Assembly (NCBI GenBank): GCA_951406725.2
Contig: OX597822.1
Span: 43,544,001 to 43,668,000, forward strand
Length of the DNA: 124,000 nt
Direction of reading: 5' to 3'
Source of the DNA: Octopus vulgaris
Taxonomy: Eukaryota
Under the pieces are notes generated by a model that was given only the letters and a program-made list of their open reading frames with translations, did no database searches and was not told the DNA's origin. Shown in pieces: positions 29,373 to 123,460 of the stretch; position 1 is the first letter of the stretch, and each line of letters begins with the position of its first letter. Made by a program: the position numbers and the translations under genes.

Positions 29373-29600
29373 CTTTATTTAAAGCAGCAGAAAATTCAAC
29401 AAAACCTATTACTCTGAGTTTCCCGTTGCCGTTCATCGGACAGTTTTTACTAGAAAAAACTGTCCGATGAACGGCAACGGGAAACTCAGGGTAACAGGTT
29501 TTGTTGAATTTTCTGCTGCTTTAAATAAAGCATATTACTCTACCACTGGTATTTGAGTACTCTTTTTTCCACCTTGTTTCACATTTATGTGTTTACTCCG
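29373..29600. mobile_element. Fold-back element: about 77-bp near-perfect inverted arms, each with a CCGA-core HHR-like motif
   Basis: ctttatttaaagcagcagaaaattcaac...cagttttt and its mirror aaaaaactg...ttgaattttctgctgctttaaataaag; the same family occurs at 35545-35790. Confidence 0.75.
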
Positions 29601-29744
29601 GTATATATATATATATATATATATATATATATATGTATATAAATGTATGTATGCATGTATGTAATGTATGTATGTATGTATGTATGCAATGTATGTATGT
29701 ATGTATGCATGTATGTATGTATGTATGTGTGTGTGTGTGTATGT

Positions 29745-29945
29745 TTGTGTGTCTGTGCTTGTCCCTGCAACATCGCTTGACAACCGATGGTGGTGAGTTT
29801 ACATCCCCGTAACTTAGCGGTTCGGCAAAAGAGACCGATAGAATAAGTACTAGGCTTACAAAGAATAAGTCCTGGAGTTGATTTGCTCGACTAAAGGCGA
29901 TGCTCCAGTATGGCCGCAATCAAATGACTGAAACAATAAAAGAAA
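29745..29945 (+). mobile_element. SINE family A tail
   Basis: catcgcttgacaaccgatgg...gactgaaacaataaaaga. Confidence 0.8.
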
Positions 29946-29977
29946 AAGAAATAGCCCTGTCACAAAATTTCTTTCGT

Positions 29978-30275
29978 TTAGATGCACTGAATTCGATTCC
30001 CGGAGCGGGCTCTGTGTTGTATTCTTTAGCAAGACATTTTATTTCATATTGCTCCATTGCACTCGATTGTAGAAATGAATTGCAACGTCACTGGTGCCGA
30101 GTTGTATCGGCCTTTACCTTTCCCTTGTACAACATCAGTGGCGTGCAGAGGGAAGGTTGTATGGGCGACTGCTGGTCTTCCATAAACAATCTTGCCCGGA
30201 CCTGTGCTTCGGACGGGAACTTTCTAGGTGTAATCCTATTGTCATTCATAACCAAAAGGGTTCTTTATCCTTTTT
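29978..30275 (+). mobile_element. SINE family D, 5'-degenerate
   Basis: Matches the 117110 copy (gcaacgtcactggtgccgagttgtatcggcc...tttctaggtgtaatcc). Confidence 0.7.
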
Positions 30276-119669: not shown

Positions 119670-119895
119670 CTTTATTGCCTACAGGGAGGCTAAACATAGA
119701 GGGGACAAACAAGGAGAGACAAAGGGATTAAATCGATTACATCGATCCCAGTGCGTAACTGGTACTTATTTAATCGACTCCGAAAGGATGAAAGGCAAAG
119801 TCGACCTCGGCGGAATTTGAACTCGGAACGTAGCGGCAGACGAAATACTGGTAAGCGTTTCACACGGCACGCTAACGTTTCTGCCAGCTCGCTGC
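119670..119895 (-). mobile_element. SINE family C
   Basis: Reverse complement of the consensus. Confidence 0.85.
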
Positions 119896-121827
119896 CCTAT
119901 ACGGGTGTCATATTACCTTACCGAGTGTACCGTTACAGATATCAAATTGGTAAACTGGTACTCCGTCGGCGGCGACGACAAGGACTCCAGTTGATCTAAT
120001 CAACGGAACAGCCTGCTCATGAAGTTAACGTGCAAGTGGCTGAGCACTCACCAAACACAAGTACCCTTAACGTAGTTCTCAGGGTAATTCAGCGTGACAC
120101 AGAATGCGACAAGGCTGGCCTCTTGAATTACTCGTATAATTCTATTTCGCCAGCAGAATGGACTGAAGCAACATGCAATAAAGTGTCTTGCTTAAGGACA
120201 TAATACACTGCTGAGTACCGGGCCTCACAACCTTCTAATCGTGAACCGTATACCCTGATCACTCAGCCACGTGACCTCACTATCAAATTGATATAGCAAT
120301 TACGGCCATACGGGTACGGAACTGGCGCAATAAATGCGACTATACGGGTTTGAAACTGATAAATACCGGACACAATTACGAATATAATATTACTGAACAA
120401 GGGGAAATTCCCAGGCCGAACTCTACTTTAAGAGGGCTCTTGTTCTGCAGATTTAGAATTAGATATCTGTTCTGTATGGAAGGGAGGAAGGCGCATGGCA
120501 TAGTGGTGAAGATGACGCAGCTGGGGTTTTTATTCCCGGACCGCTCAGTGCTTTGTGTTCTTGAGCCAATAAACATGATTTCACGTTGCTCTACTCCATT
120601 CCACTCAACTGTAAAAGATGGACTAATTCCACGATGGACTGGCGTCCCGTTGAAATTTCTGTCCCCGGTCACTTCCACCTTGAAAATCGGGTAATTTGCC
120701 CTTTGAGTCCTAGCACCCAAAACAGTAATTATTTACTTCTTGGATGGGATACATAGTAAGTTGTGTGTGTGTGTGTGTGTGTGTGTGTTTGTGTTGTGAT
120801 CGTGATAGGCGTAAAGATAGATAATTCTTTGACGGAATATGAATCGTTTTGTGAAATGTTTGGCTTCGTGATAATGAAAGAAACCTGCGATATGTGGTCG
120901 CTCTAGAAATAACTAAGATTTCCCTCAACTCCCTAAACTGTTAAACCAGGAAGATGGTATTGATAATGTAGTCTACTGTATACATTGGTTGGAGCAAAAT
121001 AAATGAGACGGTTACGGCGGGAATACATTCGACAACTCATCGTGTTCCAACCTGAATTCCGTTCGTCTTTACGTTCCGAACTGAAATTCCGCCGAGGTGG
121101 TCTTTGCCTTTCATCCTAAGAACTATTTAATTAAATCACTGAAAATCAAACAGAACGCTAATGCGGATCAACATCGGATCACCATCGGATCAACTGGAAT
121201 CAGCATCATTGTAACCGGCGTAGTGCCAGTTAATCACTTTGATATCCATATCAAAGGTAATGTGATATGGGTATTAGCGCATTCAGTTTATCAGTCAATA
121301 AAGTGAGTACCAATAGAGTACGAGAGTCGATGTCAATGATTTACCGTTCCCCTAAACTTGTTGGCAATGTGCCAAAGCTTGAAATCAATACTAAAGTGGC
121401 AAAGTATCGATCGATCCCGAAATGGTGAAACGCAACGTTAACTTCGGTGAGAATCGAACACAGAACGTGTGGAACTGTGGAACTGGAAACAATAAAGTAA
121501 ATCGTATTGTGATGGACTTCTAAATGACTCGGCTAATTAGGCATGTTTACCGTTCCTTACCTTACGCAAAATAATCACATGTTTACACACAGCGATGATA
121601 TCACAATTCTTAAATTTAACAGGGAAATGAGTGGGTATGTTGGTGTAATCAGCCAGTACACTCGTCGTCAAAATAAGGGCTTTCGGCTCGATTCTAACGC
121701 CTGCTAATGCCATTTTCTCCCCTCGGGTTTCTGTATCCCCTAATTTTAGATACTATTTTCTATAATCAATATAGTGAAAGTTTGTATATATATATATATA
121801 TATATATATATATATATATATATATAT

Positions 121828-122285
121828 AGCAAAAATAAATCTCTGAACGAGGTATAAACAGTAGCTACACGACATCGTGAAGTATATTTGCCACTTAAAT
121901 GTGGCTAACCCTTAAGGGTGGATGCTACTGTAGCTTGTAGCCCCAGGAGGACACCTCTTCCAGCTGGCTATTGACACACTTTCTGTACCTTATCAGTATT
122001 TTCAAAGGGAAGCCATCGTTCTCGTCCTCAACCTATGATACACACGGACTCGAGTTTCTGGGTATTGACCCGTCATCAGCGTATGAAAATCACTGGCTGT
122101 CGATGAAAAGTAAGCCTCCCTTTGCAAATATATATCCTTTTTCCAGTGACAAAAAGTCACTGATGTCGAAAAAGTGTAAACAAGCAAAAATATATCTCTG
122201 AGCGAGGTATAAACGGTAGCTGCACTACATCGTGAAGTATATGTGTCACTTAAATGTGGCTAACCCCTAAGGGTTACCCACATGA
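121828..122285 (-). mobile_element. Candidate non-LTR retrozyme: 355-nt monomer, about 1.3 copies, with a terminal fold-back
   Basis: gcaaaaata.atctctga occurs at 121829 and 122184. The right end is a hairpin atgtggctaaccc/gggttacccacat; the left end is in (TA)n. Confidence 0.8.
122041..122085 (-). ncRNA. Type I hammerhead motif, canonical core
   Basis: CATACG-CTGATGA-CGGGTCAATACCCA-GAAA-CTCGAG-TC-CGTGTG; ACTCGAGT palindrome and GUC site. Confidence 0.75.
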
Positions 122286-123269
122286 TATATATATAAGTAT
122301 ATATATATATATATATATATATATATATATATATATGCCGAGGTGGAAATCCACGCCACCATCTCTTCAGTTGTCCGGAAAAATGCTATGAAAAATGACC
122401 GTTATACAAAGGGAAATTACTGTGTGATTGACCGTTATTAAGACAAAAGAGCTATTTGAATGACCACTAAGTGAGGGGTGGGAGTAAAAGTAAGTGGGTA
122501 AAAATAGATCATAGTATTCGCGTTAGCGCGCATGTTCATAGTTGCACACGCGCGCCCGCACACACACGTGCGTGAACCTAAAAGTACACATTCATCCACC
122601 CTCACTTGAAAACCTACACATCCTCACTCGCACCATTCGCAAATGTATATACATACAAACCCCACCACTCACACGCGCACCATAAGGGTTCATACACACA
122701 TCTATATACGCACAAGCACAAGAAAATACAGGGCTAAGGGTAACAATACAGAAAAAAGGTATAAGGGTGTATACAAAGAGAAAACCACGTATATATACGC
122801 ACATACACTTATGCATGCACACACACGCTTATATTGCACATACCCGCACACGTTCATATACACACACACAAGCACGCGCTAAAAGGATCATACATACGTC
122901 TATATGCGCACACACACAAGAAAAAACAGGGCTAAAGGCAAAAATACAGGAAAATGTGTAAAAACACTGAGTAAAATACGTCTATATACACACGTACTCG
123001 CATGCTCGCACACACGCACACATCTATATACGCACATACCCGCACACACGCACACATCCACACGTGCGCACAAAAGATAACATAGACACGATTATATAGG
123101 CACAGGGAAAAATGCAGGGCGGAGGGTAGAATACAGAAATATTATATGTAAAAAATATATAAGCAATAAACCTATAAACGTCACGATGTGTTGCAGCTAC
123201 TGTTTATAACTCGCTCTAAGATTTATTATTGCTTCTTTACACTTATTCGATATCAGTGTCTTTACGATA

Positions 123270-123460
123270 CTGTAAAAAGTATATGTATTTGTGAAGGGAA
123301 CCTACTTTTCATCGACAACTGTGATTGTCACACACCGATGACGGGTCAATATCCAGAAACTCGAGTCCGTGTGTATCATAAGTTGGAGACGGAAAGTATG
123401 GCTTCCCTTTGCAAATACTGATAGGGCGCACAAAGTGTGTCTATAGCCAGAAAGTGTGTC
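123270..123460 (+). mobile_element. Partial monomer of the 355-nt family with a CCGATGA-core HHR at 123329-123373
   Basis: CACACA-CCGATGA-CGGGTCAATATCCA-GAAA-CTCGAG-TC-CGTGTG. Confidence 0.75.

Follow-up and report, generated by a model that had tools for sequence, protein, structure and literature searches.

A stretch of Octopus vulgaris DNA of 124,000 nucleotides (contig OX597822.1 of assembly GCA_951406725.2, positions 43,544,001 to 43,668,000 of the forward strand; hereafter the window) was analysed for repeats bearing hammerhead ribozyme (HHR) motifs in which the U at core position 4 (U4) was replaced by C (C4). U4 is treated as invariant in hammerhead descriptors. Based on the comparison of copies across the genome, it was shown that C4 was a heritable state of source copies and not scattered damage. 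The motifs were assigned by sequence comparison to two independent hammerhead lineages, namely fold-backs derived from a Penelope-like element (PLE) and a set of three tandem-repeat families, distant relatives of one another and similar in type to retrozymes (the 361, 355 and 57-kb families), which have units of 310-361 nt. We proposed that the motif is probably an attenuated but functional dimeric HHR of the PLE type, which tolerates C at position 4.

The sequence CCGAYGA occurred 27 times in the window, when 13.6 +/- 3.8 occurrences were expected, and none of 100 shuffled sequences reached this count. The canonical CTGAYGA stayed at the chance level (23 seen, 26.8 expected). A preliminary description of the window had placed CCGAYGA at the CUGANGA position in three copies of the 361 family, in four fold-back arms, in an element at 57.0 kb and in a copy of the 355 family at 123.3 kb, and all these sites were confirmed by reading and parsing (Table 1). 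Together with a canonical copy at 122073, all ten named sites were parsed as type I HHR motifs with a short palindromic helix III, nine of them with CCGAYGA and one with CUGAUGA, which supported their assignment to the PLE type of hammerhead. The order of parts was common to all ten: stem I, C-Y-G-A-N-G-A, stem II, GAAA, palindromic helix III, UH and stem I. The parts listed in the preliminary description (stem I, GAAA or a one-base variant of it, the palindrome and the GUH site) were thus recovered, with GAAU replacing GAAA at 35649 and with a decayed stem I at 56987-57037. Among the positions of the type I core (C3 U4 G5 A6 N7 G8 A9, G12 A13 A14, A15.1-U16.1, H17), only U4 departed from expectation. 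The first pair of stem II was non-Watson-Crick in most of the motifs, as had been noted earlier: the 361 family had U.U, the 355 family C.A and the PLE family A.N, and the consensus of the 57-kb family had A-U. A structural descriptor comprising stems I and II and the palindromic helix III matched five C4 sites and one U4 site in the window and gave no match in 30 Markov-shuffled controls. The other four named motifs missed the descriptor solely through private decay. The Rfam hammerhead models gave no match at the gathering score over the whole window.

Helix covariation, on which the preliminary description had made its proposal depend, was present. Among 12 lineage-level variants of the retrozyme-type families, a set with few independent lineages, 8 of the 16 pairs changed on both sides. 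The covariation score was 0.509 versus 0.246 in shuffles (0 of 500 reached 0.509), and slid controls gave 0.24 at most. The PLE clade showed covariation in all three helices; in each helix, most positions took several kinds of Watson-Crick pair. The palindromes of helix III also differed by lineage (CCAUGG, CUCGAG, CUGCAG, CCGUACGG and CCGCGG), and several of them occurred with C4. Position 4 was the sole core base that varied between the lineages of this genome, and it did so in both independent hammerhead lineages. Because position 4 alone varied and the helices and the palindrome covaried, also among C4 lineages, the motif appears to be still under selection, which argues for a core that is maintained with C tolerated at position 4 only.

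The consensus sequences of the 355 and 57-kb families were folded as dimers with RNAcofold, and the predicted minimum-energy structure was a double hammerhead with an 8-bp intermolecular helix III. The 361 unit and the 355 dimers had the same predicted minimum free energy with U4 as with C4; hence, secondary-structure modelling cannot tell the two states from each other.

Element families and the state of position 4

The earlier view of four separate repeat families overstated their independence. A weak but significant sequence similarity of the 355 family to both the 361 and the 57-kb families was found, none of the three resembled the PLE 3' region, and only the PLE-derived fold-back family was unrelated. 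The three related families have the HHR architecture and a self-paired unit in common. The retrozyme-like families formed dispersed arrays with a period of 359-361, of 1 to 9 or more units each, on many chromosomes.

The genome-wide search patterns carried N at the core positions, so that the samples were unbiased toward U4 or C4. The preliminary description had proposed to judge the variant by the consensus of many copies, and this consensus differed by family. Only C4 was present in the 361 family and it prevailed among the genome-wide copies of the 57-kb family (C 16, U 5, G 2), whereas the 355 family was mostly U4 (U 60, C 24 in 84 loci) and the PLE family was split (U 37, C 38, G 3 in 78 loci sampled from 7,969 copies). 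The other core positions were conserved by at least 92% each in the 355 family and by at least 96% in the PLE family.

The fold-back family was traced to a PLE. Over 211 nt, the copy at 29450-29660 shared 93% identity with the 3' end of a U4 PLE bearing an open reading frame (ORF; locus L128), and the copy at 35632-35837 was 84% identical to the same 3' end. In both, the truncation lies about 11 nt upstream of the core, an inverted arm is attached and (TA)n adjoins; the window has this PLE only as such 5'-truncated fold-backs. Genome-wide, the PLE hammerhead was present in 7,969 copies when a pattern with 19 fixed flanking or stem bases was used, and in 10,915 copies with a looser pattern. Many of the HHRs formed '-/+' pairs 45-100 bp apart, and the '-/+' pairs 3-4 kb apart were head-to-head inverted copies with arms of 1.1-1.7 kb and 96-98% identity. 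The 5'-truncated ORFs of L128 and a second locus, L131 (416-504 aa), contained by eye the motifs YRDD and GVVY...YTG, which look like those of a reverse transcriptase and a GIY-YIG endonuclease (RT-EN). In all, 2,029 homologues were found; they are about 710 aa long and lie on contigs of about 2.3-3.3 kb. The search of the ORF against local Pfam and NCBIfam libraries and PDB sequences gave no match, and its identification rests on the motifs, the length of the homologues and the context. The helix III of this family was a 7-nt quasi-palindrome, CUC-N-GAG, with an unpaired centre. The U4 copies were essentially one haplotype, the one with the ORF-bearing copies, and the C4 copies fell into at least 10 haplotypes, all differences among which were confined to N7, loop 2, position 11.1 and the helix III centre.

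Further, ten distinct hammerheads beside homologous RT-EN ORFs (44-57% protein identity) were collected from other public samples. All of them were U4, nine with CUGANGA and one with a known U3-A8 covariant, and their helix III was likewise of 7 nt with an unpaired centre. Since all ten foreign PLEs carried U4, it was shown by this sequence comparison that U4 is ancestral in the PLE clade and that C4 was derived from it in the lineage of this genome. The related PLEs found in a public metagenome or other assemblies (L132-L144) measured about 2.3-3.3 kb; their ORFs comprised 700-750 aa, and the HHR was located about 65-215 nt upstream of the ORF start. Their contigs repeated start to end, which suggests tandem copies, and most of them had U.U as the first helix II pair.

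The array of the 361 family in the window had a period of 361 and a 99% match by tandem repeat finder, and its flanks were read. The family consensus of stem II, UAGGCAAUACACCUU, gave the pairs U.U, A-U, G-C and G-C. C4 was fixed: all 1,203 copies with exact flanks genome-wide had C, and none had A, G or U. Units at different loci differed by a median of 1.1%, by which the family was recognized as the youngest and most homogeneous. The mismatch rate elsewhere was about 0.6% per site (1,405 copies at <=1 mismatch versus 1,203 at 0) and would predict a few non-C4 copies; their complete absence may be explained by array homogenisation or by extreme youth of the family. The unit folded as a circle had a predicted energy of -114.4 kcal/mol (z = -5.5).

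In the 355 family, position 4 followed the subfamilies. Copies with a helix III of the CUGCAG type comprised 28 U4 and 1 C4, and those of the CUCGAG type comprised 24 C4, 23 U4 and about 2 CCAA. Distinct subfamily consensus sequences were obtained from 60 copies. The median non-CpG divergence was 0.094 for the U4-XhoI subfamily, 0.060 for U4-PstI and 0.056 for C4-XhoI, the last being the youngest and having three derived diagnostic bases of its own. The U4 subfamilies likewise had their own non-CpG diagnostic bases and were no younger than the C4 subfamily. The 355 family also included a 352-nt array of 9 units on contig C2.

When a 34-nt pattern was allowed up to 3 mismatches, it matched the window copy of the 57-kb element only; the family was recovered by a DNA search. 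Its C4 variants had a palindromic helix III in both forms seen, CCGUACGG and a shorter CCGCGG type, and the sampled copies of the latter type were partly decayed.

The mode of integration was compared with that of PLEs, the hallmark of which is an inverted 5'-truncated upstream copy together with microsatellite targeting (PMC8557442). Such tandem or inverted insertion was present here, including the window copies at 29.4 and 35.6 kb, and the microsatellite bias was also present, as PLE 3' ends adjoined (TA)n. For the 361 family, 20 of 30 sampled loci had (TA)>=5 within 40 nt on both sides versus a background of 6.6%. Among the 31 loci with 361 arrays on contig C1, the order '- then +' was found in 17 (for example C1:141725938-141728406) and '+ then -' in none. 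In these head-to-head arrays the 5' ends met at the centre, a one-way polarity as in PLE insertions. Animal retrozymes have been proposed as non-autonomous PLE derivatives (10.64898/2026.07.22.740005). On the basis of the common integration style, (TA)n with an inverted 5' arm, it is most likely that the PLE machinery mobilises both groups of elements.

Readings of the C4 core

We proposed the following course for the attenuated dimeric ribozyme. The short palindromic helix III would form only by pairing of two ribozyme copies, and the C4 ribozyme would probably still cleave, more slowly, as a dimer in multimeric transcripts, perhaps with the help of a protein. In the uridine turn, C4, possibly protonated at N3, would stand in for U4. 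Hammerheads of PLEs act as dimers (PMC4209133), and other RNAs can accommodate a protonated C in place of the U that opens the U-turn (PMC4105743, PMC6061696). Additionally, according to the statement in PMC3088659 that cites Ambros and Flores 1998, a natural U4C variant of a viroid hammerhead had considerably lower activity in vitro and was infectious and functional in vivo.

Several observations weigh against this proposal. All single mutants of CUGA in a type III hammerhead were low in activity in a deep mutational scan (PMC9901934), and minimal PLE HHRs are slow in vitro even when canonical (PMC4209133). An Anolis PLE still inserts in vitro when its HHR has been made catalytically dead by mutation (PMC11167929), and PLE clades without HHRs thrive (PMC8557442). 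The sampled ORF-bearing PLE copies in this genome were all U4, and C4 was seen only in short truncated PLE copies. A G4 sub-lineage of the PLE (CGGACGA) was also propagated, as one haplotype at 3 separate loci (e.g. C1:21147853, C1:22180085 and C1:22330919). In the retrozyme-type families either state may be the original one (C4 predominates in the 57-kb family and U4 in the 355 family, and the 361 family has C4 throughout), and C4 either arose repeatedly or persisted for long. Rfam hammerhead models at E <= 10 gave no match to loci of 140-730 nt, canonical U4 copies included; the models do not capture the architecture with a short helix III.

A lesser but serious possibility is that C4 effectively kills cleavage, that the families spread nevertheless since retrotransposition of the PLE type needs no ribozyme catalysis, and that the rest of the motif is kept either through the recency of the change or through a role of the fold or dimer as an RNA structure or protein-binding element. 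The low activity of CUGA mutants, the G4 sub-lineage and the U4 state of the ORF-bearing copies all agree with a dead C4 core. However, dispensable catalysis should also free the other unpaired core bases, and none of them differed between lineages in the 78 PLE loci and 84 loci of the 355 family, or across the deeply diverged 57-kb, 355 and 361 families; in the ten foreign PLEs the U3-A8 covariant was the only core change. The retention of the palindrome in both forms of the 57-kb C4 variants is likewise unexpected for a dead ribozyme, although the CCGCGG-type copies had partly decayed. Still more tentative is the idea of a 'C-turn' hammerhead, in which C4 would be a genuine natural core class, catalytically competent and positively retained. 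Such a protonation- or protein-dependent attenuated ribozyme might let multimeric or circular RNAs of the retrozymes and PLEs last until reverse transcription. If true, it would explain the independent rise of C4 in PLEs and retrozymes and its fixation in the most recently amplified family.

The preliminary description had suggested that C4 was probably the state of the active master elements and that CpG decay would turn CCGA into CTGA, so that the U4 copy at 122073 might be a decay product. C4 as the ancestral or the only active master state is unlikely, although C4 was fixed in the 361 family, prevailed in the old 57-kb family and was spread over more diverse PLE haplotypes than the single U4 haplotype. 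CpG decay as the origin of U4 copies was rejected. The observed/expected ratio of CpG in the window was 0.89 at 37.7% GC, that is, essentially without CpG depletion, the CpG columns of the 355 family were not more diverged than other columns, and in the XhoI-type subfamily 23 copies with CTGA stood against 2 with CCAA, the mirror product of decay; the decay argument therefore has little force. The copy at 122073 was not a decayed C4 copy, because it bears the diagnostic bases of the older U4-XhoI subfamily. With the age of the U4 subfamilies and the U4 state of all ten related PLEs elsewhere, the idea is largely refuted for the 355 and PLE families. What stood of the suggestion is that C4 is a master state. 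It is not the only one, as U4 is also the master state in two 355 subfamilies and in the ORF-bearing PLE lineage.

We regard it as very improbable that RNA editing is responsible, either by C-to-U editing that restores U4 or by U-to-C changes written into DNA through reverse transcription of ADAR-edited antisense arms of fold-back transcripts. In the first form the active RNA would be canonical, and in the ADAR form the variant would reflect a mutational bias. Two circumstantial points fit, namely that inverted-repeat arrays would form long dsRNA and that an identical transition recurs in unrelated families. The subfamily-diagnostic changes, however, were not dominated by A-to-G or T-to-C transitions. 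Finally, a chance resemblance to hammerheads, with which the lack of an Rfam match would agree, is already refuted by the empty controls of the descriptor, by the covariation of the helices and by canonical U4 homologues within the 355 and PLE families and in foreign PLEs beside RT-EN ORFs. The dimeric, attenuated HHR with a tolerated C4 thus stays the reading that we prefer.

Features of the window

Table 1. Hammerhead motifs and repeat elements located in the window (positions are those of the window)
Feature	Position	Strand	Sequence or composition	Basis
PLE-derived fold-back element, (AT)n on both sides	29367..29660	.	direct 5'-truncated 3' end 29450-29660 (+), inverted partial arm 29367-29455 (-)	
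HHR, C4, inverted arm	29402-29447	-	helix III CUCAGAG	parse and descriptor match
HHR, C4	29456-29501	+	AAAACUGU CCGAUGA ACGGCAACGG GAAA CUCAGGG UA ACAGGUUU	parse and descriptor match
HHR, C4, decayed, inverted arm	35570-35616	-		parse
Older PLE-derived 3' end, inverted arm on left, adjoins (AT)n	35632..35837	+		sequence read and comparison with L128
HHR, C4 with GAAU	35641-35686	+	CCGACGA ACGGGAACGC GAAU CUCUGAG UA	parse and descriptor match
361-nt retrozyme-like array inside (TA)n	46267..47467	.	inverted unit ~46267-46665 (-), then 2.2 direct units 46673-47467 (+)	
HHR, C4, 361 family	46435-46484	-	ACCACACG CCGACGA UAGGCAAUACACCUU GAAA CCAUGG UC CGUGUGUG	parse and descriptor match
HHR, C4, 361 family	46842-46891	+	private U-to-A in stem II	parse and family consensus comparison
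HHR, C4, 361 family	47203-47252	+	equals family consensus	parse and descriptor match
Old, diverged, self-complementary unit of the 57-kb retrozyme-like family	56850..57160	+		71-78% identical to other copies; matches own reverse complement
HHR, C4, 57-kb family, stem I decayed	56987-57037	+	CCGACGA AGAGAACACCCCCU GAAA CUGUACGG UC	parse
355 family, ~1.25 units, U4-XhoI subfamily, (AT)n-flanked	121830..122290	-	diagnostic ATCATAGGTTG = U4-XhoI consensus	sequence read
HHR, U4, canonical, 355 family	122039-122087	-	CUGAUGA CGGGUCAAUACCCA GAAA CUCGAG UC	parse and descriptor match
355 family copy, C4-XhoI subfamily, boundaries approximate	123170..123460	+	diagnostics ATCATAAGTTG, GTCTATAGCC = C4-XhoI consensus	sequence read
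HHR, C4, 355 family	123327-123375	+	CCGAUGA CGGGUCAAUAUCCA GAAA CUCGAG UC	parse

The microsatellites (TA)n, (TATC)n and (AAT)n were very abundant in the whole window, (TA)n being the landing site of all elements studied. All calls of the Rfam searches ranked by E-value were spurious and microRNA-like, and they fell on AT repeats and the PLE fold-back hairpin. The latter (29406-29497) scored as plant MIR395 with 51-55 bits (gathering score 56), an artefact of its being a near-perfect inverted repeat, which could mislead automated annotation. What may be left of an old PLE is located at 89637-89783 (-), where tblastn gave a weak match (32% over 50 aa, E = 5e-4) to a related PLE protein, P0003, in its C-terminal endonuclease region.

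At 65142-65776, a SINE-like unit (GGAATTTGAACTCAGAAC...) was repeated in tandem or partly so, with periods of 184 and 146. The unit looked tRNA-related by eye and may resemble octopus SINEs. Unrelated minisatellites were present at 107242-107475 (periods 29/87) and 117580-118021 (periods 46/92).

Comparison with known systems

The hammerheads of PLEs, the retrozymes and the U4C substitution are each already known. The searchable literature yielded neither cephalopod retrozymes nor a description of large genomic families in which C4 is inherited as the fixed or prevailing state, although an earlier description is possible, for instance in Lunse et al. 2017. The preliminary description had left it open whether the variant had been reported, and to this extent it appears new; the substitution itself has a natural precedent in the viroid U4C variant, as cited in PMC3088659. 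The core substitution is identical there and, as far as that citation goes, the variant was likewise weaker in vitro and functional enough in vivo. It was sporadic in a population of an RNA replicon, whereas here C4 is fixed or prevails in repeat families that are encoded in DNA and number thousands of copies. A structural rationale may be offered by the U14C variant of the neomycin riboswitch (PMC4105743, PMC6061696), in which C protonated at N3 donates a hydrogen bond to a phosphate in place of the U N3-H at the first U-turn position; for the hammerhead C4 this is a lead by analogy.

The claim that strict motif searches miss the variant was supported. Searches with CUGANGA only would overlook the youngest retrozyme-like family entirely, with its 1,203 copies, and about half of the ~8,000 PLE hammerheads, and the Rfam models miss even the U4 copies. 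The number of ribozyme-bearing repeats would thus be understated here and perhaps in related genomes. One genome holds U4 and C4 lineages that are closely matched, such as the XhoI subfamilies of the 355 family and the PLE haplotypes with copies about 7% apart, and they are natural paired constructs. These bear on whether the uridine turn is strictly required in dimeric PLE-type hammerheads and whether self-cleavage is needed for the mobility of PLEs and retrozymes.

The fold-back family is similar to the minimal type I HHRs of PLEs (Cervera and de la Pena 2014, PMC4209133) in its type I topology and in a very short palindromic helix III that implies dimeric action. Also alike are the location in the untranslated region or pLTR of the PLE, the opposite-strand pairs 50-700 bp apart, the large copy numbers and the many covarying consensus families. 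Unlike those HHRs, about half of the PLE copies here are C4 and a few are G4, the first helix II pair is A.N (U.U in related PLEs) where G10.1-C11.1 was described, and the 7 nt of helix III form a quasi-palindrome whose centre is unpaired.

The retrozyme-type families correspond to the animal non-LTR retrozymes (Cervera and de la Pena 2020, PMC7229834; Li, Clavereau and Pollet 2026, 10.64898/2026.07.22.740005), which are dispersed tandem repeats of about 170-400 bp, each with a type I HHR. They are alike in the dispersed short tandem arrays, in one type I HHR per highly self-paired unit, in the co-occurrence with HHR-bearing PLEs and in the PLE-like integration signature. They differ in the C4 core, fixed in the youngest family, in arrays that are very often head-to-head inverted and in a GC content of 42-47%, not clearly below 45%; the families here are known from genomic DNA alone. 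The common (TA)n targeting and the inverted arrays provide independent support from an invertebrate for the mobilisation of animal retrozymes by PLEs.

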